From Macrostomum lignano (lineage: Eukaryota), in contig NIVC01000042.1 in NCBI GenBank assembly GCA_002269645.1, positions 310,001 to 374,000 of the forward strand: a DNA stretch of 64,000 bases, written 5' to 3'. Position numbers and translations under genes: made by a program. Of this stretch, positions 3,362 through 51,300 are shown in pieces. The notes beneath the pieces were generated by a model. That model saw nothing but the letters and a program-made list of their open reading frames with translations, was not told where the DNA came from and made no database searches. How positions within the stretch are numbered: the first letter of the stretch is position 1; the number at the start of each line of letters is the position of its first letter.

Positions 3362-4075
3362 TACTAGGTGTGCCTCCGACAGGTGCATCCGCCAACTGCG
3401 CCTCAACCAGGTGCCTCCGCCAAGTGCCCCTGCCAGGTGTGCCTCTACCAGGTGCCTTTGTTTGCCGAAATCTGCTAGCCGAAATTTGATAGCCGAAGTT
3501 TGTGTAGATATGTTAAAACTTAACTTAAAACTTAACTTAAAACTTAAAACTTAACATATCTGAACTACCTGCCTTCAAATTTTATGATTGTAGTGTTGGG
3601 CACGCCTGTAATTTTTTACCAATCGGCCTTTTCCTAAAAAACCATAAAAATAGGTTTATCTTGACCAAAGTAGCCAAATTTTAAAGTGTGAGCGAGCATA
3701 GAATTAACAAAAACATTTTGTATGTGAAGTACAATCAGATTCTTGTCATACGAGTACCACAAAGAAATTTCTGATTGGGTAATTTTCAATTGCATTACAT
3801 GTATATTACAAAACAATGCAGGACCCAATTACATGTATATACTCGTACTGTAATTTGCGCCACTGCTAATCAACACAACAAATAAGAGTCAATAGAGCGA
3901 TTATTAAGTGCAAATTTAATATTGTCTTGATAAGTCCTGATAAGTTTCTCGCGAAATTGGACAAACAAAATTGTCTCAGCAAATTACAACTTCGTGAGTT
4001 CGGCCAGCCAAATTGCTGCTCACCGGTTTTTGTCGGATTCTCGCTAGCAGATTTCGGCTAGCAAACTTCACATTT
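3362..4075. mobile_element. Possible MITE/foldback remnant
   Basis: GCCGAAATCTGCTAGC at ~3465 is the inverted copy of GCTAGCAGATTTCGGC at ~4043. The left arm has short CAGGTGCC subrepeats and resembles the arms of the 59.6-61.0 kb foldback. Confidence 0.4.
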
Positions 4076-7316: not shown

Positions 7317-9205
7317 TTACCTGTTTGGAGCCGGGACAGTTTTCACCAAGTAGAACTTCTTAGTGGTCAAAACATTCCAGTCTGGCAGTTGCTGTCGAGT
7401 TGATACCGGCAGGTAAGTTTTCGGATTTGTCTTACTTTGTACGTAACTAGTCATCTGCTTGTTGACCCTGCTGATCATTGAGAGCACGTCCTTATTCCCA
7501 GCGTACTGGTGGAAGACCCAGCACAAGGCGCAGATAAACCTGGAGCCGCTGATCGCCAGACCGCGGCTCTCCTCACCTGGCAGGGTTGAGTAGCCCACGA
7601 TTAGTCCCGCTCTGTTGGGAGAATGGTCTGTGTAAGTCGCGGGACATCCGGCCAAAAAGTGGTCAGCAAACTTAGAGCTTTGAATCACAGTAGGACCGTC
7701 GGATCCTTCGGGTCCCGTCAGGTCCTGGCTGGGCGGAACAGTGATCCGGCAGGCATTGATGATGAGCAGCCTGGGCTTTCGGGCCAGGTGTGGAGCATCA
7801 GAAAGCTTTTGAATGACATATTCAACCGTGATCCAATTCGGGAATTCTCCAATGGCAGCCTCAACTCCGTACAGGCGATGCTGCGAACCGTGCTGCGATC
7901 CGTGCGTGAGAATAACCAAAATTGCACAGCTTGCGGCTTCATTTTTTTCCATTTGGCAAAACTCGTCTACAGCCTTCGTCATATCGGGCGATTTCAAGTC
8001 ATGGCGTACGTCAACAGACATTCCGAGGCTAGTAAACAGGTGCCTGAGGTTCTCGCAGTCAATTTTAGTGCCTCTTCTTCGATTTAGCGCATCAAAATGC
8101 TCATTGCCAATAATGAGAACCTGTCCATCTCCATTGTTCTCGTAGTAGTCACCCAGAAAATCTGGTGCTTCAAGTGGAGAAAAGTTTGATTTTCCCTTCA
8201 GATCAGGATGATTTTTCAACAGGCGATCTTTTGGGTTTAAAAGCCTCGATTCTTAATTCTGGCTTGTTTTCGATTCCTTTGATGTAAAATTTGTGTCTCG
8301 TATTGCGCTGCTCCAACTGTCTCAGCACCTCATGCATGGCGGCACAGCTGCTCAGATTTTCGGGATCATTCGAGTCCTCGATATTGTCCTTCAAGTCAGC
8401 CAAAAAGCACAGTACATTGTTCTCATCGCCGCGCTTATAAATCAGAGAGATATTCGATTCGTCCGGCCATGTCTGATTCAAGAAGTCTTCATCTTCACGA
8501 ACATCCGGAGAGTTCGGATTCTCCCCGTCTTTCAGCCTGCAGAACACAAGCAGTATTGGCAAGGACGAATCGAAGTTTTGTTGAAGTTCCGACACGACCG
8601 TCGCTAACGATGTCGAAAATCGCTGGTTTGAATCTAAAGAGCCAACTAGATAGAAAAATATGTGGATTCGACGCTGCGCCTCTGGGCTCTGAACAGCGGT
8701 TGGTCTTGATGCTGGAGCGGATGTTTGGTTTGTCAGCAATCCGATAGTGTCAAACAAGCCCTTGTACTGGTCCAATAAATCCTTAAGGTGTTTTTCAATC
8801 GCTTCGCCCTGCAGATCAGTGTAGATGTCAGCCTTTCCTCGGACTTGGTCCCACTCTAGCGGAAATAGTAAAATAAGAAATTAGTCACGCACAAGGGGAT
8901 TTGGACGATTGAGAGGGATTAAAACTGACCATTACAGGTTTATACCTACCCGAGTTCGGTAAATCATTCTGCAATAGAATACCGTCGGCAGATGCCACGT
9001 ATGGAGTCGAACTTTCTGAAAAATATATCGACATACAGTGAATATTGCATTAGAATACTGCATATTCATTAATAAATTTCTCACATATTATCAATAAAAT
9101 TGGAAAATCATTAGAAAACATTGTTGAAAGCAAATGATATTCTGAGCATGCGCAATACTCACTGTTCTCACTCGGATCCGTTGTTGGTAGCACCTGTTCG
9201 CTCAT
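7317..9205 (-). CDS. Caspase-family (C14) protease A with ~230-aa unrecognised N-terminal domain; one frameshift near 8228
   Basis: Predicted exons: 9205-9163 (MSEQVLPTTDPSEN, donor GTGAGT, phase 1) and 8855-7317 (acceptor after GACTAA and a pyrimidine tract, ...GCTAG). Caspase motifs LIIGNEHF, RRRGTKIDCENL, ILTHGS (His), KPRLLIINACR (Cys), GYSTLPGEES, GSRFICAL, TTKKFYL. ORFs 8203-8775 and 7317-8219 join if one A is removed from CCCAAAAG. Confidence 0.8.
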
Positions 9206-14126: not shown

Positions 14127-14297
14127 TAAACCGCGGGGAAAGGAACGAGGCAAGACAAGGGATGGCGCGAAACGGAACCTCCAAACCCAAACCGGAGAAC
14201 GGACAGAAACGGAGACAGGAGTAAAAGAAAAGACACCGGGAAACTAAAAGAGCGGAGAAGCTAACGCCGGCACAGACACAGTTAGACAGCTAAACAG

Positions 14298-15362
14298 TTA
14301 GAACGCAGCCTGCACCGCTGCCCCGATGCGACGAACAGCCCGGCTGGCCACCTGCGGCTGCTGGCCCGCATAGAGATGCACCGCATCGCTCTTCCAGTCG
14401 CCAATGGCTTTGATATCCTCGATCGCGATGCCTGAACGCCTGGCGAAGGTGGCGCCGCCTCGGCGCAGGCTGTGCATTGAAAAGCGGTTTCTCGGAAGGC
14501 CAGCCTGGTGAAAAAGCTGGGACAACTCGCGCCGGACATGCGCTGCAGTTAAGCTCATCCAGCTTCCTGCTGACTGCAGGGTCGAGAACAGAGGCTGCGA
14601 AGGAGGTGCAATGTCTAGTGAGTTCCGGCTGAAATGATGATGGAGCGCACAAAGCGGACACAGCGGAGCAGTCGCACTCTTGCAGATGCAGGGCAGAAGA
14701 ACGACATGACGGCGCTCGCCGAATTGATTCGTCTTGGACAGGCGAACAGAAATCCGAGCCTCCTTGACGCCCAGGCGAAGATCGCTGATCAGCACCGCCG
14801 TGCCGACGTTTGCCCGGCTGACAGAGCAAAGATTGGCCGCCCGCAGCATGGCCCACCAGCCGGCTAAGATGAGACTCCACAGAGCAGCTCCCAGGCCGGT
14901 CTGCAGCTGTAGGCAGCGCCGCAGTCGCAGAAGATGACTCGGCCCCAGCGCAGCCTTGCGGCGAACGGGCGTTGCGGCCAGCAGCCGCTTCGCACCTCGA
15001 AGAGCCAAGCGCACGAGTCCAGAGTCTGTCGTAACCGGAGAGTCGCTGAGTCGCAACAGAGTGGCGATCGAGCTGATGTATGCCTGCAGGCTCGATTGTC
15101 GCGACAGGCGATGGTGCATGAGGAAGTTGATGAATTGGCAAATCTGAGTTGGAGTCGGCTTCAGAGCTTTGATCTTTGCCTCGCTGCAGAAAGCGAGCCA
15201 CGTCCTCCATTTGCTTTCCAGCGACCGCAGCGTCGCCGGTGCGAAGGCGGCGCGAACTAGAGGGAGCAGCTCGGTTGGCAGCCCAAAGGAGGCGGCACCT
15301 GAAAAACAGGGTGGAGGCGGAAGCAGGACCCAGCGCATGGGAAGCAAATTCAGAGGGATCAA
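14298..15362 (-). CDS. Tyrosine recombinase of the YR retroelement
   Basis: Catalytic set intact: WAMLRAANL (R), SKTNQ (K), HSLRRGG (HxxR), GDWKS (W), VHLY (Y). Uninterrupted 354-aa ORF overlapping the pol frame. Confidence 0.9.
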   Translation of the reverse strand: MIPLNLLPMRWVLLPPPPCFSGAASFGLPTELLPLVRAAFAPATLRSLESKWRTWLAFCSEAKIKALKPTPTQICQFINFLMHHRLSRQSSLQAYISSIATLLRLSDSPVTTDSGLVRLALRGAKRLLAATPVRRKAALGPSHLLRLRRCLQLQTGLGAALWSLILAGWWAMLRAANLCSVSRANVGTAVLISDLRLGVKEARISVRLSKTNQFGERRHVVLLPCICKSATAPLCPLCALHHHFSRNSLDIAPPSQPLFSTLQSAGSWMSLTAAHVRRELSQLFHQAGLPRNRFSMHSLRRGGATFARRSGIAIEDIKAIGDWKSDAVHLYAGQQPQVASRAVRRIGAAVQAAF

Positions 15363-16964
15363 TCAACAAATGACCGTAGAAACGAGAGGCAAAATCAATC
15401 AGAGCAGCGCCGCCCGTCAGGAGACGAGAGGCGGGGTCAGCGAGGAACTGGCGGCAACCGGGCATGTAAAAGACCTTAAAAGTGATCTGCTGCTGCATGC
15501 AGACTAGCCCAGCCTGCATCAGAAGGTCATTCACGATGGGACACTTAGCAGAGCCACGGTTGAGCATGCCGACAGCTGCTTGGTTGTCGCTGTAGAAGAC
15601 CACCTGGGCCTGATGAAGCTGGTCACGAAACCGCAGCAGAGTGAGAGGAGCGATAGCCGCCTCCTTGTAATTGATGTGCAGATCGGCCAAACGGCCGTCC
15701 AAGTCCGAGGAAAAATCTACGAAAAACCTATCGCGGAAGCAGCAACTGCTGAGAATAGCGGCGCCGCCACTGATGCAGGTGTCATTTTCCACGGCCAAGG
15801 CGTCGGAGAAGATGGGCCAGATGAGACGATCGTGGTAACACCTGACGGCCGATTCCCACCATTGAAGAAGATGCCGCAAACTCTCGCAAATGCGCACTCG
15901 ACGATTTTCACGACTAAGACTCTCGGTAAACTCGATGATGGGGCGAAGGAACATGCGAATTTGTCTTTGCACCTGGCAAAACCAGCTCAACTTTCCGGTG
16001 AGGCGACGCAAGAAGGAAGCAGAGACTTGTCTAGCGGCAAGACAGTCAGTGAGCAACTGACGCAGCTCATGCAGCTTTTCCGGAGGCAGAGACATGACTC
16101 CGATGTCTGTCTGGATACGAACACCGAGGAAGACCATGTCCTGACAAGGCGGGGTGCACTTTTTGCGGTTGACCTCGAAGCCAAGATGCTCCAGAAGACT
16201 TAGCAGGTGATCATAGGCCTTGAAGCAATCTCTGTAGGTAGCGGCAGTGACAGCAAAGTCATCCAGATAGTTCACAACAGCGGTATAGCCGTCCTTGACC
16301 ATGAAGCGATGAATGGCTTGAGAGACACGGTGAAAGCTAGGAACAGAGCCGGCAGCACCCATGGGAAGGCGTCGGTCTTCCATGTAAGTAACGTGATCGT
16401 CGCCGGAAAACTTTAACTTCAGACCAAGAAGAGGCCAGCAGCTGGGGTGGCAGGCAATGGACCAATACGCCGAGGAAATATCAACTTTGGCCATGAAGTG
16501 ACCTGGCCGAAGAAGACGCACGAAATCCTCGACAGACGCAAAACGCAGCTTGCGGTCGGCGGTGAAACAGTCGTTGAGAGACGCATTATGCGGGACGGAG
16601 CAGTCGTGAATGAGTCTGACGCCACCAGAAGATTTGCGAATAGCCCCAAGCGGGCTCACCAAGCTTGGCGGATCTGGCACAACCACGACTCTACCCCTGC
16701 GAATTTCTTCAAGCAGCAGGCATTCGACCTCCTGCCTGAACTCCTCCACCGACGGGTAGTTATCAGACTCAAAGGCGGCACTTGAGAACCGTCGTCGATT
16801 AAAGAAAAACCAGCACGAAGACTGTCGACAAGGAAAGTCTCATCCGGATCTCCACGAAGACGCTCCTCCCAGACAGCCACGACGAGGTCGCCGCACCGAC
16901 GGGGATCGACCGGAGGACAGCCGTTAGCTAGCCGGTAGGCAGGGTCGATGACGGAGGCCGACAA
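15300..16964 (-). CDS. Reverse transcriptase/RNase H of the YR retroelement (one frameshift near 16775)
   Basis: SPLGAIRKSSGGVRLIHDCS, AKVDISSAY, LPMGAAGSV, YLDDF, VFLGV. RNase H acidic residues in NDTC, HINYKE, SDNQAAV, ADPASR. N-terminal FLVDSLRAGF (ORF 16656-16964) joins FESDNYPSVEEF by a single-base shift. The frame stays open to 14290 through the YR gene. Confidence 0.88.
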
Positions 16965-24418: not shown

Positions 24419-27400
24419 TCAGGGAGCCACTGAGCGAATGAACCCCGCCTTGGCCAGGCAGTCCAGAGTCTCCTTGGCCAGGTCGCGGGCCGCCTTAAAC
24501 GCCGGCTCATTGTCCAGCCTGCTGACGGCCATCAGCACTTCAAGCAGCGGGGAGGCGGCCACCCGGGCGGCCAGCTCCGAGTCGGTGCAGGCGCACGCAT
24601 TCCGCAGGATGTACAGGCCGCGATGAGCAATTAGGGGATTAGGATGCGAGGCCAGGTAAGACATCGAGTCTGGCCAGACAGGATACGAGAGCATCCGGCC
24701 GACCACTTCCACTCTGGTGGTCAGGTGGGCCAAGGCGCCTGAGGCGGCCAGGACGAGGCGCTCGCGATCGGCCGGCGTCTCCGGCGGCTCCTCTGGCGCG
24801 GCAGGGGCAGCTGGGGCAGCTGTAGTAGCCTCGTTATCTTCTGGCTTAACCAAGGGTTCGAGTTTGTCCTCGCCGTCGCCTCCCTCGTTAATTGGGGCCA
24901 GCTTCTCTTTTTTGTCGTCGGCGGCTTCGGCCGTTGATTCGTCCGCGTCGCGCGGCGGAGCGCAGAACAGCAGCAACAGTTTGACGTCCTCGGAGGTGCC
25001 GGCAGCGGCGGCGGCAGCTATGGAATCGCCGACCTTGTCCAGCAGGCAGAGGTTGCACAGGCACTCGGTGGCGGCTATACGGAGCTGCCTATGATCGTCG
25101 TACATGTAGTGACGGATGCGGCCGAGACCGATCTCGGACAGCAGGCGGGAGCGGAGGCTGTCGCCGGCGCTGGCCAGGTTGGTCAGGGCTAGCAGGGCCT
25201 CGTACACCTGGGGTGTGTTCAGGAGTGATTCTTAATGGAGTGAGGGTGATTCTCAGTGGGGTGAAAGTAATTCTCGATGGGGTGAGAGTGATTTTCAATG
25301 GGGTGAGAGTGATTCTCAGTGGAGTGAGAGTGATTCTCAGTGGAGTGAGAGTAATTCTCAATGGAGTGAGTGATTCTCAATGGAGTGAGAGTGATTCTCA
25401 ATGGAGTGAGAGTGATTGTCAGTGGAGTGAGAGTGATTCTCAATGGGGTGAGAGTGATTCTCAATGGGGTGAGAGTGACTCTCAGGGGCTGGAGAATGAC
25501 TCTTAGTAAGACAGAGTGATTGTCATCAGCTAGGCCAGAAAGCAGAACTAAAAGTAGCCCCAAGGTGCTCAATAATCACCTGCAGCGAGTTGGCCTCCGC
25601 GTGCAGCAGCTGATTGAGCGGCCGGACCAGCTCGGCTGCCCGCTGTCCGGGGAAGGCGGTCTCCGGGTTGAGGCTGACGGCCAGCCTGGCCAGAGCTTGG
25701 GCAGCCAGCACCTGGCCACCGTCCGTGTTTCGACTGTTGGCCAGGGACAGCAGCGCCTTGGCCGCGCCGGCTGCCACGGCCGGGCCGCGGTGCTCCGGCA
25801 TGGTGAGGGTGGCCAGAAAGACTCGGCTGAGCAGTTCGCGACAGGTGTTGGTGACCTGCAGATTGATTGCAAAATAGGGATTGGAGGGATTGGACAACCG
25901 ATGTGTCACATATTTAGAAAATTATTATTTTTAGTAGAAGTAAATTATAAAGATTTACTTTTTATCATTTGACGTATTTTCCTATATTTCTACTGTACTT
26001 AAGTAGAGTACTTAAAACTCGATTCTTTTGCTCGGGCAAAAAATCGATTCTTTTTTTGCTCGGCCAAAAACTGGCGGGATTCTTTTGGTCGGACAAAAAC
26101 TGGATTCTTTTGCTCGGACAAAAACCGGATTCTTTTGGTCGGACAAAAATTCGATTCTTTTGCTCGGACAAAAACTGGATTATTTTGCTCGGCCAAAAAC
26201 TGGATTATTTTGCTCGGCCAAAAACTGGATTCCTTTGCTCGGACAAAAACTCGATTCTTTTGCTCGGACAAAAACTCGATTCTTTTGCTCGGACAAAAAT
26301 TCGATTATTTTGCTCGGACAAAAATTCGATTCTTTGGCTCGGACAAAAATTCGATTCTTTTGCTCGGACAAAAATTCGATTATTTTGCTCGGACAATAAC
26401 TGGATTCTTTTGCTCGGCCAAAAACTGGATTCTTTTGCTCGGCCAAAAACTGGATTCTTTTGCTCGGACAAAAATTCGATCCTTTTGCTTGGACAAAAAT
26501 TCGATTATTTTGCTCGGACAATAACTGGATTCTTTTGCTCGGCCAAAAACTGGATTCTTTTGCTCGGACAAAAATTCGATCCTTTTGCTTGGAAAAAAAC
26601 AGGATTTTTTCGGCCAAAAGTGGAATTTTTGCTCGGCCAAAATACTAGTACTACTGCACCGTAAAAAAACTGATGGGGCTTGTCTTAGATATCCTATATT
26701 TGGCAACTCACCTGCATTGCCTTATCCGACACGGAGGCGAGCTGCACCAGAGCTGGCAGCATACCAGCCTTCACTAGCCGATTAATCCGACCTTCAACCC
26801 AGGCGTGCCCGTCCTTCTCGTGCTCCTCGGGCACGTGGTGCTTAGCGAATTTGGCTAGTTCAACCATCTCTGGCATGATGTCCTGCTTATCGTAGCTGTT
26901 AGTGAGGTTCACTAGCACAGCGGCGCACGGATAAACAATGGCGGGATCGCGCGAGCGCAGAGCCAGATCCGATAGGGCCTGCAGAGCTTCAGTGTGCTCG
27001 CATAGGTCCTCTTTCACCTGTTTTCAATTTTAATTTAATTAATAGAGAAACGCATTTGAAAGTGATCGATACTATATAACACATTAGCGAAATCATTAGT
27101 GACACATTAGAGACATTCTTAGTGACACATTAGCGACACCCTTAATGACACATTAGCGACATCCTTAGTGACACATTAGCGACACCCTTAATGACACATT
27201 AGCGACACCCTTAGTGACACATTAGAGACATCATTAGTGACATTATTAGTAACACATTAGCGACATCATTGGTGACACATTAGCGACACCCTTAGTGACA
27301 CATTAGCGACACCCTTAGTGACACATTAGCGACACCCTTAGTGACACATTAGCGACACCCTTAGTGACACATTAGCGACACCCTTAGTGACACATTAGCG

Positions 27401-30400
27401 ACATCCTTAGCGACACATTAGCGACACCCTTAGTGACACATTAGCGACATTCTTAGTGACACATTAGCGACATTCTTAGTGACACATTAGCGACATCCTT
27501 AGTGACACATTAGCGACATTCTTAGTGACACATTAGCGATATTCTTAGTGACACATTAGCGACATCCTTAGTGACACATTAGCGACATTCTTAGTGACAC
27601 ATTAGCGATATTCTTAGTGACACATTAGCGACATCCTTAGTGACACATTAGCGACACCCTTAGTGACACAGTAGCGACATCCTTAGTGACACATTAGCGA
27701 CATCCTTAGTGACACATTAGCGACATTCTTAGTGACACATTAGCGACATTCTTAGTGACACATTAGCGACACTCTTAGTGACACATTAGCGATATTCTTA
27801 GTTCCCAGGGACTAAGAAACCAGTGGGAAAAGCTAATCTCACCTCAGCGTCCAAGCACAGAAAGGCAAGCCCCTCAACAGCCCACCGACGCAGGTCCAAG
27901 TCTTTGTCCGGATTAGCCAGGAATCGTCGACAAGACTTGGCCAGCACTACATTGGATCCGTCGGCCAGGCCGCGACAGGAGCTGTCCGAGCCGCTAGCGG
28001 TGCCCAGTTTGCACAGGCCGACTAGAGCCCGGACTTTAATAGAATCTTTGCCGCTAGTGTACAGCTGCTGGAGTACAGGCATAGCTGAGCGCAGCACCGA
28101 GTCGGCTTTGGCTTTCTTGCTGATTGCCAGCACTAAAGTCTCCAGGGCGAGGCGCTGGTGCAGTTCTATGCCGCTCTGAGCTAGAAGTAGGACGCCTGCG
28201 AACGATGAAGAGGTTGAGTAACCGTTTTATCAATAGAGACAGACACAAAGTCCGATGAATGCACCAATGCATTTTAAAGCCTGTAATCGCTTTAAAACGT
28301 GGTAGATCGAAATAATTCAATCCAGTTGAATGAGGCGATTCTCAATGGGAGTCAGAGCTGTTAAGGGATAAGAGCTAGACAGAATTAGCATCTAGCCCAG
28401 AAGTCGGTAACTTAACTTATGGACCAGACAGAATTTAGCGTTCGAATGCGGTTTAGAGAGAAGAGAAAATAAAGAGAAAAGAGGAGAGATAAGAGACGAG
28501 AGCTGAAAAGAGAGGAGTGAGGAGAGCCCAGAGGGAGAGGAGAGGGGAGAGGAGGGGGAGGGGAGGAGAGGGGAGAGAGGAGAACGGAGAGGAGAGAGGG
28601 AGACAAGAGACGAGAGCTGAAAAGAGAGGAGTGAGGAGAGCCCAGAGGGAGAGGAGAGGGGAGGAGGGGGAGGGGAGGAGAGGGGAGAGAGGAGAGGGGA
28701 GAGAGGAGAACGGAGAGGAGAGAGGGAGATAAGAGACGGTAGAGGAAGCGGAGACGGGGAGAGAGGAGGGAGAGGAGGGGAGGAGAGAGAGAGCCGAGAA
28801 GAGACACAAACCTTGAGCAGGCCAGATAGTGACACATTAGCGTTTCAAAGGACCCGAGGAACGGATAGAGGCTTCGCGGGTTCGGATTATCCGACCCCTG
28901 ATCTAGCTAATACAAGCACTCACCCTCCAGAATGCCCTCGCTGCCAATAATAGACTGCGCAATCTCGTGCGGCCCCTCCAGCAGGGCGCCAAGCGCATTC
29001 AAGGCTTCAATTTTAGAATCGAAGAATTTATCGGTGAGCAGGTCCATTACAAAAGTACAGGCGGCCTCTCGGAAAGTCTGACGCATCTGATCCGAAGTCA
29101 AATCATCGTAGACCCTGGCCAATAGTAGAGAAGCGTGACGCCTAGTGTCCTCAGTCACTCGCAGATGCTCGTGCGAGCCTTTGTGAAAAGCGCAAGTAAC
29201 GTTGAGTATAGTCTCAATTCCGCCGCAGTCTAGGAACTGTTTGTACCAGGCTAGGGATTCCTTCTTATTGATTAGCATCACCTGTAGAAGGGATAGATTA
29301 ATTAGTATTGATTATTAAGACTTAAAATCAGCATAAAAGTACGATGGTCACATTTTTTGTGACCGTCAAGAATGTGACACTGTCTGTCACACTTGTGACC
29401 GTCAAATGTGACCGTAATGGAACGGTCACTAGGTTTATGTGAGGGTGACATCAGAAGGTCAGTATGGAGTGTTACATGCGATACCGGTGTTTGAGGGTCA
29501 CAGAACGGTCACATAGGCAACATGTGACCGTTCCACTCTTATAGGGGTTACATATATATTTAGCCTACATCAACACAACTATTAATAAAATTACCAGCAG
29601 CTCCAGCACGGAATCTCTAGTAAAAGCCTGCAGCCGGTTGCTATGCGAAGCCTGCAGCAATTCTCGCAGTAGGGCGTCAATACGCTGAGCAATTTCGTCG
29701 CTAAGCAACAGCTGAGGCAGCGGCTTAGCAACCATGCCCATGGCTAGGGATTTGCGCCGATCTTCTTCCGCTTTGCTGCGTCGCTTCCTGTTTAAAAATA
29801 AAAGAATGCATTTAAACTCATTACATTATATTAGTATAGATTGAACTAATAGACTGTTTGATACAGGGCTTGCGCGATCAGATCCGAATCTCGTCAGTTT
29901 GTTTTACTGTCAGTAGTATCTATTGTTTATCAATAAGCATCATTTGTGTGCACAGCTGCATTTGTTAATGATACGAATGTAAATTGGACATGTCCAATGG
30001 CGCCACACACAGACACACTATTCAATGTCACAATGCCACACCACACACAGACACACTATTCAATGTCACAATGCCACACCACACACAGACACACTATTCA
30101 ATGTCACACGGCGCCACACCACACACAGACACACTATTCAATGTCACAATGCCACACCACACACAGACACACTATTCAATGTCACAATGCCACACCACAC
30201 ACAGACACACTATTCAATGTCACAATGCCACACCACACACAGACACACTATTCAATGTCACAATGCCACACCACACACAAACACACTATTCAATGTCACA
30301 ATGCCACACCACACACAGACACACTATTCAATGTCACAATGCCACACCACACACAGACACTATTCAATGTCACAATGCCACACCACACACAGACACACTA

Positions 30401-33400
30401 TTCAATGTCACAATGCCACACCACACACAGACACACTATTCAATGTCACAATGCCACACCACACACAGACACACTATTCAATGTCACACGGCGCCACACC
30501 ACACACAGACACACTATTCAATGTCACACGGCGCCACACCACACACAGACACACTATTCAATGTCACACGGCGCCACACCACACAGACACACTATTCAAT
30601 GTCACACGGCGCCACACCACACACAGACACACTATTCAATGTCACGATGCCACACCACACACAGACACACTATTCAATGTGACATGGCGCCACACACAGA
30701 CACACTATTCAATGTCACACGGCGCCACACCACACACAGACACACTATTCAATGTCACACGGCACCACACCACACACAGACACACTATTCAATGTCACAC
30801 GGCGCCACACCACACACAGACACACTATTCAATGTCACGATGCCACACCACACACAGACACACTATTCAATGTCACAATGCCACACCACACACAGACACA
30901 CTATTCAATGTCACACGGCGCCACCCCACACACACACACTATTCAATGTCACACGGCGCCACCCCACACAGACACACTATTCAATGTCACACGGCGCCAC
31001 ACCACACACAGACACACTATTCAATGTCACACGGCGCCACCCCACACAGACACACTATTCAATGTCACGATGCCACACCACACACAGACACACTATTCAA
31101 TGTGACATGGCGCCACACACAGACACACTATTAAATTTCACACGGCGCCACCCCACACACATACACACTATTCAATGTCACACGGCGCCACCCCACACAG
31201 ACACACTATTCAATGTCACAATGCCACACCACACATACACACTATTCAATGTCACACGGCGCCACACCACACACAGACACACTATTCAATGTCACACGGC
31301 GCCACACCACACACAGACACACTATTCAATGTCACGATGCCACACCACACACAGACACACTATTCAATGTGACATGGCGCCACACACAGACACACTATTC
31401 AATGTCACACGGCGCCACCCCACACACATACACACTATTCAATGTCACGATGCCACACCACACACAGACACACTATTCAATGTCACAATGCCACACCACA
31501 CACAGACACACTATTCAATGTCACACGGCGCCACACCACACACAGACACACTATTCAATGTCACACGGCGCCACACCACACACAGACACACTATTCAATG
31601 TCACACGGCGCCACACCACACACAGACACACTATTCAATGTCACGATGCCACACCACACACAGACACACTATTCAATGTGACATGGCGCCACACACAGAC
31701 ACACTATTCAATGTCACACGGCGCCACCCCACACACATACACACTATTCAATGTCACACGGCGCCACCCCACACAGACACACTATTCAATGTCACATGGC
31801 GCCACACCACACATAGACACACTATTCAATGTCACAATGCCACACCACACATACACACTATTCAATGTCACATGGCGGCACACCACACACAGACACACTA
31901 TTCAATGTCACATGGCGGCACACACACAGACACACTATTCAATGTCACGATGCCACACCACACACAGACACACTATTCAATGTGACATGGCGCCACACAC
32001 AGACACACTATTCAATGTCACACGGCGCCACCCCACACACATACACACTATTCAATGTCACACGGCGCCACCCCACACAGACACACTATTCAATGTCACA
32101 CGGCGCCACACCACACACAGACACACTATTAAATTTCACATGGCGCCATACCCAGACACCAATAATCAGATTTCTCACCTATACTCTTCAATACCAGCCA
32201 TCTCCCACACCAGAGATTTGAGCAGCATCAGCAGGGAACGGGAAATAGTGTCAGACTCGGACAGCACCAGCAGCCGGTGCACGCCCTGCACAGAGATGGT
32301 GTCCAACAGTAGGCGACTCCGCTCAGCCGAGTCCTTAGTGAGATTAGACAGCAGACGGGCGGCGGCTTCAAAGGTATTAGGCGACGAGTTGACAGATTTA
32401 GTAGCCAGTTGCAGCACTCTGGGCACCAGACCGGGCGAATCCCACAGAGCTAGCCGGCAGGCAGGCTGGCGGCACAGGGCGGTCATATTATTGAGGCACT
32501 GGACTCGTTTCTCTTCGTCAGTTTCAATTTCGTCGCTGCAAATTAGCGATAGCATTGATCGAGTCTTGGCCTCGGTGGTGCCGACTTCTTCGCGGCGTTT
32601 CTCCAAGGCGACCTGACGTTCCAGTTGGGAATTTATAGTTGAAACTGTGAGAAATCGGGAACTATCCAGGCTAGTTTATTATTATAAGTAGTTCAATATA
32701 CCATCCGCGCAGCTCAGCGTTGGTGGAGTATGCATATCAATTATGCTAATGAATACATTTCAAATAGCCTGTTAATTAGGATATCATCATTATATTTTGC
32801 GGATTCGAGAGTAAAGGAAAACGTGTTAGAACAGGACTGGCTTGAATTGCAGATAGAATGGGAGGGCGGCGGCTGGTGGCCCAGCAACTGAGGATCTGGG
32901 AGGCTGGCCCAGCAACTGAGGATCTGGGAGGCTGGCCCAGCAACTGAGGATCTGGGAGGCTGTGGCCCAGCAACTGAGGATCTGGGAGGCTGTGGCCCAG
33001 CAACTGAGGATCTGGGAGGCTGTGGCCTAGCAACTGAGGATCTGGGAGGCTAGCCCAACATCTGAGGATCTGGGAGGCTGGCCCAACATCTGAGGATCTG
33101 GAAGGCTGGTCCAACATCTGAGGATCTGAAAGGCTGGCCCAACATTTGAGGATCTGGAAGGCTGGCCCAACATCTGGGGATCTGGAAGGCTGGCCCAGCA
33201 ACTGGGGATCAGAAACTGGATAGTTGTACAACAAATGAAAGAAGTTATTAATAAGGAGCACTGAAGCAGTCACAGGAAGAAGATAGCCGAGATCAAAGCA
33301 CTCACCTGCAGCCTAGCCAGCAGGGGTTGCACAGCCTTGTTGCCGGGGTCCTGCTTAAACAGCTGACTGGCATCCTTATAAGCGTCGGCCAATTTGTCTG

Positions 33401-33698
33401 TAGCTTCATAAGCCAACGCCCGTCTAAACAACGCTTTGGGGTCGTTCGGCCGGCGCTCCAGCACAGCGGAACAGTCGGTCAGGGCCGATTCGGGCTGGCC
33501 AAGCTTCAACGCGCACTGAGCCCGGTTGCTAAGCAGCGCAATTGACAGGTCGGCTGGCAAATCGCTGCCCGATTCCAATGCCCGACTATAGATATCCAGA
33601 GCCGATTGAAAATTGCCCCGCTGGAATTCCTCATTACCGGCGGCTTTTAGGCCGGCTGGCGATTCGTCTCGGAGATCGGCGTCGCTAGGGCTGACCAT
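24419..33698 (-). CDS. unc-45: UNC-45 myosin chaperone (TPR + central ARM + UCS domain), 8 coding exons
   Basis: Exons 33698-33306, 32612-32179, 29787-29595, 29281-28924, 28195-27843, 27017-26712, 25855-25580, 25207-24419; all GT-AG with consistent phases. [12 protein letters not shown]...SNRAQC...KALFRRA; [12 protein letters not shown]; [16 protein letters not shown]; [16 protein letters not shown]; [10 protein letters not shown]; [12 protein letters not shown]. Confidence 0.95.
25225..25500. repeat. 21-bp intronic minisatellite, ~13 copies
   Basis: Unit TCTCAATGGAGTGAGAGTGAT. Confidence 0.9.
26010..26640. repeat. 25-bp intronic minisatellite, ~25 copies
   Basis: Unit TTTTGCTCGGACAAAAACTGGATTC. 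Confidence 0.92.
27090..27800. repeat. 23-bp intronic minisatellite, ~31 copies
   Basis: Unit CCTTAGTGACACATTAGCGACAC; a stray partial unit at ~28828. Confidence 0.92.
28445..28810. repeat. GA-rich low-complexity tract with an internal direct duplication
   Basis: AAGAGACGAGAGCTGAAAAGAGAGGAGTGAGGAGAGCCCAGAGGGAGAGG occurs at ~28490 and ~28605. Confidence 0.8.
29878..29943 (-). ncRNA. Candidate C/D-box sno/scaRNA, family 1 (U2-antisense), copy A, unc-45 intron
   Basis: ATGATGC(C)...AACAATAGATACTA-CTGA(D')...TGACGA(C')-GATTCGGAT-CTGA(D); sense to the host gene. Confidence 0.6.
30001..32150. repeat. 38-39-bp intronic minisatellite, ~56 copies
   Basis: Unit CACACAGACACACTATTCAATGTCAC(AATGC/ACGGCGC)CACAC. 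Confidence 0.95.
32714..32790 (-). ncRNA. Candidate C/D-box snoRNA, family 2 (18S G1328/yeast G1271 guide; SNORD32/snR40-like), unc-45 intron
   Basis: ATGATGA...AACAGGCTAT-TTGA...TGATAT...CTCCACCAACG-CTGA. The guide is complementary to 18S AGUUGGUGGAG. Confidence 0.7.
32875..33210. repeat. 28-30-bp intronic minisatellite, ~12 copies
   Basis: Unit GGCCCAGCAACTGAGGATCTGGGAGGCT. Confidence 0.92.
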
Positions 33699-33816
33699 GG
33701 CTCGGCTGGCTGCCAAATGAGATGCCCGCTTTGGAACCTGAGATAATTAGAAAAATTGATTTAGTACACTATGACATTATTTGTGCATTTTTTAGAATAG
33801 ATTTTAAACAGATTTT

Positions 33817-34070
33817 GCTACCCTCTCCCTGATCCTTTGGGGTGGGGGGGCGCGACCCTCTCCCTGATCCTTTGGAGGGGGGGGAGGCGCTACCCTCTCC
33901 CTGATCCTTTGGGGGGGGGCGCGACCCTCTCCCTGATCCTTTGGGGGGGGGGAGGCGCTACCCTCTCCCTGATCCTTTGGGGGGGGGGGGAAAGGCGCTA
34001 CCCTCTCCCTGATCCTTGGGGGGGGGGGAAGGCGCTACCCTCTCCTGATCCTTAAAGGGGGGGGGGCTAG
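33817..34070. repeat. ~33-39-bp repeat with variable poly-G, ~7 copies
   Basis: Unit (T/G)ACCCTCTCCCTGATCCTTT(G)n-GCGC. Confidence 0.85.
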
Positions 34071-34118
34071 ACCCAGTCAAAGCGACACAGTTCGTATATA
34101 ATCAGCTAAAAAGCTTAC

Positions 34119-34163
34119 CTGAAAGTTAAAAATAGCCTGCCGCCTAACAGCTGTTGTTGACTA
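34119..34163 (-). other. Probable 5' UTR exon of unc-45
   Basis: Acceptor TTTTTTTCAG at 34164 and donor GTAAGC at 34118; a further donor GTAAGC at 34637. Confidence 0.5.
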
Positions 34164-34259
34164 CTGAAAAAAAAACAAAATTTAAAGACTATATTAGTGC
34201 ATGATTATTTCAATTGACAAGTAATAAAAACAATACTCTAATTGTTATAAACAAAAAAA

Positions 34260-34334
34260 TCAGAATCCGAATCGCATCAGACTACTTTTATGGAAATCAG
34301 CAGTATCTATTGTTTTTTTTATAAAAAGCATCAT
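34260..34334 (-). ncRNA. Candidate C/D-box sno/scaRNA, family 1, copy B
   Basis: ATGATGC...AACAATAGATACTG-CTGA...TGATGC-GATTCGGATT-CTGA; inside a GT-AG intron at 34637-34164. Confidence 0.6.
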
Positions 34335-34516
34335 TTTAGTTATTCTTTCAATATTTAATACATTTTGATTGCTTATATGTTTACCTCTTAATAACGAGAG
34401 CGGACAAGGCCTGGTGTCTGAAAAGAAAAATAAGTTTGAAACCAGCTTTAGCAAATTTGCCACAACGATGCAGAAACGAATTTCAGTAGTATAAAAATAT
34501 ATTAAAAGTCGTTACA

Positions 34517-34576
34517 TCAGAATCCGAGTTACATCAACTAATATCAGTAGTATCTACTGTATTCAATAAGCATCAC
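34517..34576 (-). ncRNA. Candidate C/D-box sno/scaRNA, family 1, copy C
   Basis: GTGATGC...TACAGTAGATACTA-CTGA...TGATGT-AACTCGGATT-CTGA; same intron as copy B. Confidence 0.6.
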
Positions 34577-34860: not shown

Positions 34861-35050
34861 ATTTACTACTACCTAGTAGTATCTTAACTACTAAGATATA
34901 CTAAGATACTACCACGACTACAATTACTACTACTACTGCTACTACTACTACTAGTACTACTACTACTGATACTACTACTACTGCTACTACTACTACTGAT
35001 ACTGATACTACTGATACTGATACTACTACTATTACTACTACTACTACTCG
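34861..35050. repeat. (CTA/ACT)n microsatellite
   Basis: Direct reading. Confidence 0.9.
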
Positions 35051-44991: not shown

Positions 44992-45324
44992 TTAGTTCAA
45001 TTCGCGGATGATGTCGGAATCTCCGGGATCCAGAATGGCCATAGTGCAGATCTTGAAGTGCTTACCGCAGGCCGTGCCCAATTCAATGTTGGAGCCAGTA
45101 TAGTGATGGACACCGGCCTTGGCCAGCATGGAGTAGTACTCAATAAGGCTCTTACGCAGCGCTGGGGTGTTATTGGCCAAGATTACCAGCTTAGCCTTGC
45201 CCTGGCGCAGGCATTTGATGGTCTGATTGAGACCGAGCACAACTTTGCCGCTCTTCATCACCAAAGCCAATCGGGCGTTGATGTTCTCCTGCGCCTTCTT
45301 GCTGGCTCTTTTGGCTGCGCTCAT
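44992..45324 (-). CDS. RPL30: 60S ribosomal protein eL30
   Basis: [17 protein letters not shown]...[27 protein letters not shown]...[16 protein letters not shown]...[10 protein letters not shown]; single coding exon, 110 aa. Confidence 0.98.
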
Positions 45325-46595: not shown

Positions 46596-48356
46596 AATCA
46601 CTATATAAGTTTTTTTCCTTCAAGAATTGAACTACATACTTACATGTCTATAAAAGCATAGGAAAGAAAATTAAGTCCAAGTCAATGCCCCTATTAGAAA
46701 GGAAAAGTGTATAGTTATAAGAGCGGTAATTTTGCCGGGCACAGTGTAGTTCTCATAATGCGCACGCATACAAAACAAGTGGCTTTAACCGAACAACATT
46801 ACGGCAGGCGAGTGTGTCGCATTCTGATAAACATACATTCATATCAGATATAATAGTACGCAGCTAATTATAAATAGTGAACAGGGTCAAACAGATCTCA
46901 ACATTTGCTATTACATATTATTAAATAAAGAAGTAAATAATTAAGTAATATGCAACTGACAGAAGGCGGCGGAAGGGAAGAGAGGAGTGGACACGGGTGG
47001 CATTTCAGCTAACACAAACGCAATTCTAAAGCTGCTGAGGGCGGCGGCGGGGGTTGACAAAGCAATAACGGGCACACCAAGACGAACCCGGAGAGGCTTG
47101 GCAATCGATTTTTTCAAATTTACTTTAGAGAAGCAGACAAAAGAAATGGTGTTATTTAATTTTAAAGACAATCCGCAGATTAGGAGCCAGTTAAATATTC
47201 TATAAAAAAGACCAACTGAAACTAGCATGCACACACGGTTCAGAAACTGAGAAAAAAGACAAACAAATTAAAACAAATTGGAGTCTCAATAACTATTCAA
47301 CAGCGAAGTAGAGACCCGAGCGTAAAGCAGAGTATACTACTCACAACTTATTAGTGCCCCAGTAGTAGTAGCAGTAGTACATGATAAACGAAAAACAGTT
47401 GGCAAAAATTAATCGAAAATAGCGTGTAGGGAGGAGTCAGTATTGAAATTGGAACCAGCACAGCAACGATTTTGAGTAAATTCTCAGCGTGCTCACGATA
47501 ATTATTATCAATATGCTGAACCATAGTTCAACTACAGGGAGAATAGTTAAGAAGCGGTATAGTTTAAAACGAAAAAATACCAATGGCAAAGAATTCCCCA
47601 CATAGCAAATCAAACAGGGCCGAACATGGAATTCATCATAATCCAATTACATATTTTTATCATTAATTTAAGCTAAAAAAGCAACAAAGAAGACAGATGA
47701 AAACAATTAAGATTTGCTGTCATACTACTGACGGGCAATAGATACTACTGAGCTACAACTGAACAGATAAGGGGGATAATTCTACAAAAGCGATAAGGTA
47801 ATATAATAGTGACACGCGCAAAAAAGCCCCACTCGCAAGCGGTTAGAGAGTAATTTAACTTGATTGAAAGCGGATTGAACTGGATAATGAATGACGGCGT
47901 AGAGATAAAAAGGATCGGAGTGAGTGAACGCCTATTTCTTTTTAAATTAGTTGGAAATGTTTTCTGATGACAGATATTTTGCAGTTCCGTTAATTAGGAT
48001 GCATCTAAGGTAAGAATAACGCAACAGTTTTGAAGGTAGATTTTAATCAGCTATATAAATTGATTAGCAGGATGTTTTAAAAGTTATACTGAATGCTTCA
48101 TCGTGTTCCTTATGTAATAAATATATTTAATCTATACTACTGTTGTGGGTGAAAATGATAAGTAGGCAAATAGAATTTCTTAGAAAAGTCAGGATTTGAA
48201 ATATTTTTAGTTAAAAAATTATTAACAAAATTCATCACTTGCCTACTTAGATCACCGAAAAAGTAGGCTATATCGAAGATATTTTAATTTAGACGAACTT
48301 AAAAAAATCACCATTCTTTTCTAGCTCAAAGTTGCACTGCTCATTATCGTGCGTCA

Positions 48357-51300
48357 TTACTCGTCGCCATTGTTACTAGTCTCGCCGTTTAGAACTTGCG
48401 GTTGAATTTTGACAACGGCAGCGGCGGCCGCTGCGGCATCAGTTGGAGAGAAGAATTCCCTAGCATAGGGGAATAAATCGTGCAATTGCGTGCGCAGCCG
48501 ATTCAAATTGTCGGCATCTACTGTGCCAAATAGATCGCCAGACCGGAGCTCAATGTAGGCATTGGAGCAGGCTTCCAGTTGGCGCTCAATACCGGCTGCT
48601 GAGCCGGCGGACAGGGCGGCGGTCAGGGCTGCTAAGCAGGCCGACTGGCTGGTGGAGCCTTCCAGCTCGTATTTTAGACGGAGGCCTGGCGTTGAAAATA
48701 GAAATTTGAATTTTTACAAAAGTACTTAATGCACGATTTATCCTACGCGGCGCTCTGATGTGCCAGCGGCCCAGGCTCGATTCCTAGTGCAGTTACATTA
48801 ATTTAGGGCTGAATTGGAATCTTGGCTTCGCTCTGCTCTAAAGTTAGGGCAGATGTACACTCCTGAGTATGTGCCTGTGCGTATGATTGCATAGGTATTA
48901 GGGGAGCCTGCTCACGGAAGTCGGCGGAAGGGGCCGAAATGCTTCTAAACGGTTGTGTGACAATGTCGCTTAAAGTGCGCCAGGGTTTTGAGGATTTTGG
49001 GAAATGATCCAATTCTAAATCTGTTATTTTATTAGTTACTTTGTTCCCTATCCATACCAAAAGCCGCTCATGCATTTAGGCTTACCCCAGCAGGTGTTCA
49101 CAAAATTGCCGGCACTCTTAGCTAGAAAGGCGTCATTAAAAGCTTTTGGCGCAACGCTGGCGCTGCCAAACAGACTGGGCAGGTGTTGCACAATCAGAGC
49201 TCGAACTGGCGGCTCCATAGCGGCCATGGCGCCCTGCTGATCGGCTGTCATAGCCAGGAAGCGAACTAAACAAGCGTGCAGCCAAGGATGGCTAGCATCG
49301 ATTGACTTGGCTTTCAATAGGCAGCGCAGCATCAGCAGCGGACGTTGCCTCGCCCGATAGACATCGAAGCCGAGGCATTGAGCTTCCACACTGTCCGGGC
49401 ACAGATTGAGCAGCGGGCGAAGAAAGGTCACGGCCTGATCTAACGGCTTATCAGTGCGGGCCAGCTTCTCAGGGTCGAGAGCCTCCTCTTTGAATGCGTT
49501 TGCGTCCGAATCGGCGTCGTGCTCTTTGTTATGCGCCTTTCTAGCCGCTAGACGGGCCGCTTGCTCTTGTTCGGCTTTTTGGCGCTCCTGGCCAAATTAT
49601 GGAATAGTTCTTATTTCTTAGGCGTTTCATTATGATATTTAATATATGAATAAATCTTTAAGCTAGTGCATTTAGTTTAATAATAAAGTGCATGTGACTA
49701 CTCTTAGACAGTAGTAGAATTTGCATATGTAAAGATAAAGTTTTTAATACTTTACTATTTATATCTGTTCTTGAGTAGTACACTAGTGAATTTTTCAAGT
49801 GAGCAACCTTAAATATTTAAAAACTCGGTAATACCAATTATGTAATTGTTCATACCTGTTCGGCCCTTCTCTGAGCCTTTCTCTGTTTGCTTCTCAGCTT
49901 TTTGGCTTCTCCAGCAGACAGGCCGTCATTTTTTCCAACAGAGTCGTCAGCCAGAGCGTCCAAAGGCCGCCTATGCAGCATGAGATAGGTGTCAATAGCT
50001 AATCGGGCCGCAGTAAAATAATACGGATGCGCTTTGAGCTTGTCCTCTAGCCTCAGCATGGACACGTACGCTCTTAGTGTCATCTTGCGCAAGCAATATG
50101 AATGGAAATCGAATTGGTCCTCGACCATTTCGTTGAAATGGCGTTCAACTTCGTGGCACTTTTTTAGGGCCTGGCCGTACTGGCCCAGGCGTTTGTAGGA
50201 AGCGGCGCATTCGGTCAGGTACCACATGCACTGCATGTCGGCCAGGTGCTCACCGGCGATTGTGCCCTCCTACAAAAAAACAAAACGTACACAATGTAAT
50301 TTTATGCTTTAGAAAGTTTTCGACGATACATATCGGCTACGCAAATTTAAAACATGGCTTTAGTTTATATTTTCACTCGTATTATTGAGTACTGTGCGTT
50401 AAAAATATTCAGAACACTGAAAAAATTGCGCTACCAAAATCGCAAAAACTCGGGGCCAAGCCGGGATTCGAACCCGGGACCTCTCGCACCCGAAGCGAGA
50501 ATCATACCCCTAGACCACTTGGCCGGCTGATCCGAAGGTGGCGAGACTGGCAACATAAACTGAGAGGCAGATTCGCAGGTTAAGCTGTGATAAACTTATT
50601 GTTAACGTGACCTAAGCTAACCTGTAACCAGCTTACGTAGGTAACCGATTGCATAAATTAAAAACATATTTAGAATACAAGTTAAATGCACAACTTAGCT
50701 TTTGAAAAGAACCGTATATTGGCGTAAGCATAGACATCTAAGACAGCAAAACAATAAATCTGTTGTTATTTGCATATGAATCAAATCATTATCTTAAATT
50801 TGTATTGAATAATAATCACAATTTACTTGAAAACTACTGAAAGTAGCATTATTATTCAAAAAGTAAATTTCACTACAAAAGTCACTATTGGTTATTATAG
50901 AGATAGATAGATAGATAGTCAGATAGATTAAGATTATTACTTACCCGAGTGAACCGACCAAGAAACTGTTCAGCCTCCTCCATCCTGCCAGCCTGTATCA
51001 GGTAGCGAGCGCAGACAGAATTGACGTATCGATCGGCCGTGTCTAAACTTTGCGCCTCTTTTAAATATTCGCAAGCTGACACGATATCGCCGGCGTCTTT
51101 GTAGATTTGGCCTTTGAGCGAGTAGAGCTCGGTGAGGGTTGGGGTGTGCTCAATAGCCAGATCGATCACGCGCAGGGCCTCGGCCGGCCGGCCCAGCTTG
51201 CTATAGTGCTGGGCCAAGTAGTACCAGACCCACACCAAGGTGGAAGGCGGCTCGGCGCTAGAGGCCGGATCCGATTCGCCGAATCTGCCGCAGTCAGCTA

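Follow-up and report, generated by a model that had tools for sequence, protein, structure and literature searches.

The question raised by this locus is whether three short elements within unc-45 of the flatworm Macrostomum lignano encode box C/D guide RNAs and, if so, which RNA they address. The elements lie in a stretch of 64,000 nucleotides (nt) of contig NIVC01000042.1 (assembly GCA_002269645.1, Mlig_3_7, positions 310,001 to 374,000), hereafter the window, whose own coordinates are used throughout. A preliminary description of the window had proposed them as three paralogous RNAs antisense to the U2 small nuclear RNA (snRNA). We conclude that the three elements are very probably real, selectively maintained, intron-encoded box C/D guide RNAs. 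As to what they do, the best-supported reading, and a reasonably probable one judging from base complementarity, is that the guide adjoining the D' box acts on U2's branch-point recognition region.

Architecture of the three elements

All three elements were re-read on the minus strand, and the coordinates, strand and box motifs first reported for them were as described. Copy 1 is a 66-nt box C/D RNA at 29878..29943, with the C box at 29943-29937, the D' guide at 29924-29914 and the D' box at 29913-29910, followed in the 3' half by the C' box (29896-29891), the D guide (29890-29882) and the D box (29881-29878). Its minus-strand sequence runs ATGATGC, a 12-nt spacer (TTATTGATAAAC), AATAGATACTA, CTGA, a 13-nt spacer (CAGTAAAACAAAC), TGACGA, GATTCGGAT and CTGA. 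Copy 2 is the longest, with 75 nt at 34260..34334 on the same strand: C box 34334-34328, D' guide 34311-34301, D' box 34300-34297, and, in the 3' half, C' box 34279-34274, D guide 34273-34264 and D box 34263-34260. It reads ATGATGC, 16 nt, AATAGATACTG, CTGA, 17 nt, TGATGC, GATTCGGATT and CTGA. Copy 3, also on the minus strand, spans 60 nt at 34517..34576, with the C box at 34576-34570, the D' guide at 34558-34548 and the D' box at 34547-34544, and then the C' box (34536-34531), the D guide (34530-34521) and the D box (34520-34517); it reads GTGATGC, 11 nt, AGTAGATACTA, CTGA, 7 nt, TGATGT, AACTCGGATT and CTGA.

The arrangement is specific within the window. A generic regular expression for C, D', C' and D boxes in this order matched three sites on both strands (128 kb), which are the three copies and nothing else, and gave no match in 200 dinucleotide-preserving shuffles. 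Likewise, an nhmmer profile built from the three copies found full matches only to the copies themselves (E 1e-19 to 1e-21). Pairwise identity among the RNA bodies of the paralogues is 0.68-0.74, whereas their flanks, 80-85 nt on each side, are 0.37-0.53 identical, the null from unrelated intron pieces being 0.51 +/- 0.04. The spacers differ in length among copies 1, 2 and 3, with 12, 16 and 11 nt on the C-D' side and 13, 17 and 7 nt between D' and C'. Since the bodies are alike while the flanks are at null level and the spacers vary, the paralogues share only the boxes and the two guide blocks, which bears out what had been noticed at first.

The C box, RTGATGC, fits RUGAUGA at 6/7 positions. 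We also observed that the base 5' of the D' box and the last base of the C' box (position 7) form a G:C pair in copy 2 and an A:U pair in copy 3, and are an unpaired A.A in copy 1; this covarying D'/C' base pair fits stem II of a K-loop. No Rfam family was found on the elements, either at gathering thresholds over the whole window or with E<=10 in the 28.5-36.5 kb interval. A weak snR69-like Rfam match at 29244-29338 was rejected, as it corresponds to a splice acceptor plus exon.

Two other places in the window resemble part of the elements. The nhmmer search returned a 16-nt fragment, CAATAGATACTACTGA, at 47736-47751 on the plus strand, identical to the guide and D' box of copy 1. It is intergenic, located between RpL30 and NAA15, has neither a C box nor a C'/D module, and is preceded by a partial duplicate, TCATACTACTGA. 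The fragment probably belongs to no functional RNA and is a relic; it may be what is left of a fourth copy. The other place is a (TAC/TAG)n-type microsatellite at 34900-35050, just upstream of the predicted first exon of unc-45, which holds GATACTACTGA-like strings, partial mimics of the guide plus D' motif; because of these strings, a weak pattern match appears at 35002-35014.

Conservation at the homeologous loci

M. lignano is a neopolyploid. Two further unc-45 proteins (P0009 and P0010), found in the 90% cluster of the unc-45 protein of the window (P0002), gave two homeologous loci, L123 and L124, on other contigs of the same assembly, NIVC01001313.1 and NIVC01000459.1, and hence nine copies, three RNAs at three loci. 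The homeologous proteins P0003, P0004 and P0005 are UniRef entries to which no contig is assigned. Each of the two loci carries copies 3, 2 and 1 in the same order and in sense orientation, with no extra copies. The orthologues of copy 1 (L123 8185-8250, L124 9326-9391) show one substitution in 66 nt, and those of copy 2 (L123 2915-2987, L124 3216-3289) have changes in the spacers and in one D-guide base only; those of copy 3 are at 2672-2731 in L123 and 2972-3031 in L124. RTGATGC and the CTGA of the D box are invariant in the nine copies, and the internal D' CTGA and C' TGAYGN are invariant within each orthologue set.

Constraint was assessed by counting changed columns in three-way alignments that included 250-nt flanks. 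The RNAs changed in 10/202 columns (5%), the upstream flanks in 145/776 (18.7%) and the downstream flanks, which are partly exonic, in 87/768 (11.3%); the RNAs are thus less changed than both flanks together (232/1544, 15%; odds ratio 0.29, p=3e-5, Fisher's test). Within the RNAs, no box column was changed (0/63) and only one D' guide column was (1/33), an A to G in copy 3 of the window, opposite a U of U2. Changes in the D guide amounted to 3/29, namely a single G to A and, in copy 3 of L123, an inversion of CG to GC, and those in the spacers to 6/77, indels included. Such a pattern is the expectation for purifying selection on a box C/D RNA and argues strongly against chance, relics and repeats. 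The structural reading is all the stronger since the three copies are kept at both homeologous loci with boxes and U2 guide nearly invariant in diverged intron flanks. A homologue search with exon 1 alone returned just a foreign unc-45 fragment (P0001, locus L121), which has different introns and no C/D element.

Host gene and intron placement

The host is the gene for unc-45 homolog B, BOX15_Mlig009547g2, whose coding part occupies 24422..33698 on the minus strand. A tblastn exon map with protein P0002 placed coding exons 1-4 at 33698-33300, 32615-32178, 29787-29595 and 29287-28922, and exons 5-8 at 28196-27837, 27020-26706, 25861-25577 and 25240-24422. The concatenated exons match P0002 at 100%; this protein is labelled 'Protein unc-45 homolog B' in UniRef, and the host protein has Pfam TPR, UNC45-central and Arm domains.

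Copy 1 is inside the annotated intron 2 of unc-45 (32177-29788). It ends 90 nt before the 3' splice site, and a CTAAT motif resembling a branch point is found between the two, 44 nt past the RNA. Copies 2 and 3 are upstream of the annotated coding sequence and its ATG, so that their intronic status rests on predicted mini-exons of the 5' untranslated region (5'-UTR). On this model, copy 3 is inside 5'-UTR intron 1 (34637-34418, 220 nt) and ends 99 nt upstream of the acceptor, and copy 2 is inside 5'-UTR intron 2 (34384-34164, 221 nt) and ends 96 nt upstream of it. The predicted donors are, in order, TAG/GTAAGC, GAG/GTAAAC and CAG/GTAAGC, the slash marking the exon end. Between the introns of copies 3 and 2 there is a predicted non-coding mini-exon of 33 nt (34385..34417, minus strand), with acceptor TTTTCTTTTCAG and donor GAG/GTAAA, which is kept in the window, L123 and L124 with one substitution in the exon. 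A second one, of 45 nt (34119..34163, minus strand), lies downstream of copy 2; its acceptor TTTTTTTCAG is conserved and its donor CAG/GTAAGC occurs in the window and in L123. Apart from this third donor in L124, all three loci keep the mini-exons and the UTR splice signals. That the elements are sense to unc-45, as first proposed, is correct for all of them; that they are intronic follows from the annotation for copy 1 and only from the predicted 5'-UTR introns for copies 2 and 3.

Splicing-coupled assembly of the ribonucleoprotein (snoRNP) classically goes with one C/D small nucleolar RNA (snoRNA) per short intron, placed some 70-100 nt before the 3' splice site. This coupling and its relation to the distance between snoRNA and 3' splice site were reportedly described by Hirose and Steitz in 2001. 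The spacings of 90, 96 and 99 nt observed for copies 1, 2 and 3 are within the range for intronic C/D snoRNAs.

Almost every intron of unc-45 contains a minisatellite, and several of these arrays give long spurious open reading frames (ORFs). They are located at 30003-32140 (38-nt unit), 33817-34066 (36 nt), 27079-27802 (23 nt), 26014-26600 (25 nt), 25223-25484 (21 nt) and 32877-33210 (28 nt). The array of 56 units of 38 nt stops about 60 nt upstream of copy 1.

Complementarity of the D' guide to U2

The U2 used for pairing was nt 1-48 of the Drosophila melanogaster RNA, rebuilt from the primers and Nm-VAQ oligonucleotides in PMC13228274, and stands in for that of M. lignano; the supplementary data of PMC6312358 and PMC2770079 yielded no U2 sequence of a flatworm. 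The D' guides of all three copies form 11 contiguous base pairs (bp) with fly U2 nt 35-45, one or two of them G.U, starting next to the D' box. Among the 518 CTGA-anchored 14-mers of the window, 11 bp were reached by the three copies and by the fragment at 47736-47751 only, and we estimate the chance of such a match within a 190-nt U2 at below 1e-3. By the canonical rule, the nucleotide addressed is the one opposite guide position 5, which is fly A39, equivalent to human A38, the last A of GUAGUA; A38 had been named as the predicted site from the outset, and our pairing leads to the same base. Fly C41 (human C40) is opposite guide position 7. The U2 of Saccharomyces cerevisiae has the same GUAGUAUCUGUU segment and carries no 2'-O-methyl (Nm) nucleotide.

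The only two variable positions of the D' guide are A/G, each opposite a U of U2. It had been argued that such differences among copies are G-U compatible, and so they are; however, for the A/G at position 1 the K-loop stem is a better explanation than a G-U pair with U2. Since this position covaries with the C' box's last base, it is probably not free, and the effective duplex would be of 10 bp (positions 2-11). Thus, the 11-nt pairing of the preliminary description exists as contiguous complementarity with fly U2, but the usable duplex is about 10 bp.

An extended pairing of copy 1 (UUGAUAA with U2 46-52) was rejected, since copies 2 and 3 do not have it. A metagenome scan for C box, guide, D' and C' returned at least 120 loci, all of them chance matches. 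The best of these (L007, 1311-1370) is inside a bacterial ORF of 303 amino acids, and its 'guide' extends the U2 pairing to 13 bp; pattern matches in very large databases consequently need context checks.

The D guide

The D guide takes up the whole 9-10-nt spacer between C' and D and has TCGGAT(T) in common, with the 5'-end variants GAT, AAT and AAC. All variants are compatible with a single target, 5'-(A)AUCCGAGUU-3', and a candidate target predicted from them reads 5'-AAUCCGAGUU-3'. Neither fly U2 nt 1-48 nor the window gave a match to it, in line with the earlier view that the D guide has no assignable target. With human U2 75-81 and with U4, the D guide would make 7 bp only (AUCCGAG).

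Proposed mode of action

The RNAs would be a three-member paralogous family, with one RNA per unc-45 intron, triplicated again by the recent genome duplication of M. lignano. Each RNA would be freed from the spliced intron, trimmed to its C/D core and assembled with Snu13, Nop56, Nop58 and fibrillarin on a terminal C/D K-turn and an internal C'/D' K-loop. Counted upstream from D', positions 2-11 of the D' guide (AATAGATACT) would pair with U2 5'-AGUAUCUGUU-3' in the region that recognises the branch point, such that fibrillarin would be placed on the nucleotide facing guide position 5, which is the A that ends GUAGUA (human A38, fly A39). As for the short D guide, TCGGAT(T), it may have a second target of its own or serve as an accessory pairing element. 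The sequences themselves show the architecture, the selective constraint, the complementarity and the placement in introns, predicted ones for copies 2 and 3. We infer that the RNAs are expressed and assembled into snoRNPs, as well as that U2 is their real substrate and the adenosine the methylated position. For the explanation as a whole, that is, an intron-encoded unc-45 C/D family with its D' guide on U2 and A38 as the methylated position, our confidence is somewhat better than even. The statement that flatworm U2 bears a 2'-O-methyl on A38 (human numbering), made by multi-copy mini C/D RNAs hosted in unc-45, is a tentative prediction from the guide sequences, one that we would sooner doubt than assert.

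Several observations weigh against this explanation. Regarding structure, position 7 of the C box is a C mismatched with the base 5' of the D box, and the terminal stems are weak or external: UGUGC/GCGCA in copy 1, 6 nt outside the boxes, AAAA/UUUU in copy 2 and about 2 bp in copy 3. Regarding pairing, the duplex is short, 10 bp without position 1, with a U.G at position 9. Moreover, guide positions 12-13 (CA) are invariant in the nine copies, yet position 12 mismatches U2 C45; the invariant CA hints at a target with ...AUUGU that would pair better than U2. Regarding the predicted site, a 2'-O-methyl at this adenosine has not been reported in human or fly U2, and our literature search gave no report of a U2 snRNA with Am37, Am38 or Am39. 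It had already been remarked that A38 is not a familiar methylation site of vertebrate U2, which is right for human U2; the known Nm nearby is human Cm40 (PMC8336889). Finally, there are two changes at the homeologous loci. The third UTR donor is lost in L124 (CAA/ATAAGC, at about 3420-3430, aligned to window 34119-34117), which leaves two options, a different splicing pattern in this homeologue or an incomplete mini-exon model. In L123 (2721-2724), CG to GC turns TCGGATT into TGCGATT and thereby disrupts the copy 3 D guide; no other guide change is disruptive, which suggests weaker constraint on this D guide.

Alternative explanations

The invariant CA would be accounted for if the RNAs were ordinary C/D snoRNAs acting on ribosomal RNA (rRNA) or another stable RNA of M. 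lignano, the complementarity to U2 being coincidental or secondary. The two bases do not extend the U2 duplex, whereas 13 perfect pairs would form with a target of the sequence 5'-UAGUAUCUAUUGU-3', as compared with 10-11 including wobble for U2. As a matter of general knowledge, most short intronic C/D RNAs are rRNA guides, and the RNAs described here are short and have no obvious Cajal-body element. However, few snRNA segments are as heavily modified as the one matched, and an 11-bp match placed exactly there is unlikely to be due to chance; the guide variants are all wobble-compatible with U2. A weak check of conserved rRNA cores gave no match to the D' guide above 6 bp, which also counts against an rRNA target. 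We consider this explanation unlikely, and the most serious of the alternatives. A different possibility is that U2 is the target and the product is Cm40 (fly Cm41), the RNAs then being the flatworm functional counterpart of Drosophila scaRNA:MeU2-C41, a small Cajal body-specific RNA (scaRNA). Cm40/41 is the only known 2'-O-methyl of this U2 segment, from fission yeast to human, and no guide for it has been identified outside Drosophila (PMC5733568); among the fly Nm sites (C28, C41, U48, plus G25 and A31), Cm41 is near-stoichiometric, at 94% (PMC13228274). Nevertheless, C40 is opposite guide position 7 and not 5, and the spacing rule of C/D guides is strict (PMC8522698); CTGA is invariant, and no alternative D' box exists two bases upstream, where the copies read TACT/TGCT. 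It is improbable, in our opinion, that the RNAs install Cm40.

Two further explanations dispense with methylation altogether. In one of them, the GATACTAC(TGAY) block would be a super-consensus mimic of a branch site that binds the U2 snRNP, for control of unc-45 splicing or as a U2 chaperone. A guide of this design necessarily resembles a perfect branch site (UACUAC then CUGAY), and the copies are confined to the introns of one gene, but such a mimic leaves the invariant C, C' and D boxes and the second guide block unexplained; besides, a distance of 90-99 nt to the 3' splice site is what one typically sees with snoRNA processing and not with branch points, and normal branch-point-like motifs are found downstream. 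This makes a branch-site mimic very improbable. In the other, the elements would be decaying pseudo-snoRNAs or repeat-derived sequence without function. The M. lignano genome is extremely repeat-rich, as reflected in the unc-45 minisatellites, and both the stray guide fragment at 47736-47751 and the GATACTACTGA-like strings in the nearby microsatellite would be at home in such a history. Decay is scarcely credible, though, for elements in which no box column has changed as against 15% of the flank columns, whose paralogues have only the functional blocks in common, and whose order, strand and intron position are kept at three loci. We therefore retain, with the strengths given above, intron-encoded C/D guides that would act on U2.

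Significance

Only in Drosophila has a C/D guide been identified for the U2 region that recognises the branch point (PMC5733568), and the RNAs described here are a concrete candidate in M. lignano, a regeneration model capable of transgenesis. Guide RNAs of flatworms are almost unannotated: their snoRNA annotation is rudimentary, and in Schistosoma, where only rRNA targets were screened, U3 was the only recognisable homologue (PMC2770079). Our literature search found no paper on Macrostomum snoRNAs and no modification map of M. lignano U2. If the proposal is true, there would be a new modification inside the helix of U2 with the branch site and a lineage-specific rewiring of spliceosome modification. 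The A38 methyl would be new with respect to yeast, flies and vertebrates, 2 nt from Cm40 and beside the pseudouridines that shape branch-site recognition; modifications in this region of U2 influence one another (PMC5733568). If the target is rRNA, the finding is simply three new snoRNAs.

Other features of the window

The window also contains a complete single-exon RpL30 coding sequence for 110 amino acids (44992-45324, minus strand), whose exact look-up returned this contig and assembly, and a tRNA-Pro(CGG) gene (50452-50524, minus strand). The latter is among same-strand exon-like ORFs of NAA15, the NatA auxiliary subunit, and is probably intronic in that gene. Retroelement reverse-transcriptase ORFs (RVT_1) were found at 1856-2575 on the plus strand and at 14290-16749 on the minus strand, and a caspase-domain exon at 7317-8219 on the minus strand.

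Comparison with known systems

In form, the flatworm RNAs follow the canonical intronic double-guide C/D snoRNAs of the SNORD24/U24 type, which have 60-90 nt, the order C/D'/C'/D, guides that abut D' and D, and a position about 70-100 nt ahead of the 3' splice site with a single RNA per intron; among them, a host gene commonly holds paralogues in consecutive introns. They differ in that the SNORD24/U24 type is nucleolar and guides rRNA methylation, while the only assignable target of the flatworm RNAs is an snRNA and they have no Rfam match. With the vertebrate SCARNA9/mgU2-19/30 and SCARNA2/mgU2-25/61 they would share the nature of C/D guides to U2. Vertebrate C/D scaRNAs 2'-O-methylate U2 in Cajal bodies in a Nopp140-dependent manner (PMC8336889) and carry GU/UG wobble-stem localisation elements (PMC4041459). 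Those directed at U2 are much longer than the flatworm RNAs, many of them with tandem domains or transcribed independently, and their targets are C61 and the 5' region of U2, not the GUAGUA box; as for the Cajal-body signal, no GU/UG repeat stem fits in RNAs of 60-75 nt whose spacers are A/U-rich. SCARNA4, SCARNA8 and SCARNA15 do address the same branch-point segment of U2, but they belong to the H/ACA class and direct pseudouridylation.

The closest known counterpart is Drosophila scaRNA:MeU2-C41 (FBgn0261453), which is, like the flatworm RNAs, a C/D guide with an antisense element to the part of U2 that recognises the branch point. It is abundant in S2 cells. It was experimentally verified to install Cm41, and according to its authors orthologues are not known from other species (PMC5733568). 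The preliminary description had spoken of a possible lineage-specific spliceosome-modifying RNA family: selected paralogous C/D RNAs with a guide complementary to U2 are indeed what we found, but the fly RNA indicates that their kind is already known. The two systems are otherwise different. scaRNA:MeU2-C41 has 123-131 nt, is single-copy and is located at 3R:7,921,951 near lds and dsx, whereas the flatworm RNAs have 60-75 nt, exist in three copies and reside in unc-45; its target, C41, is two bases 3' of the site predicted for the flatworm and opposite position 7 of the flatworm guide. The size, the copy number, the host and the predicted site place the flatworm RNAs outside the scaRNA:MeU2-C41 gene family, and what makes the two alike, across very distant phyla, is the RNA segment to which their guides are addressed.

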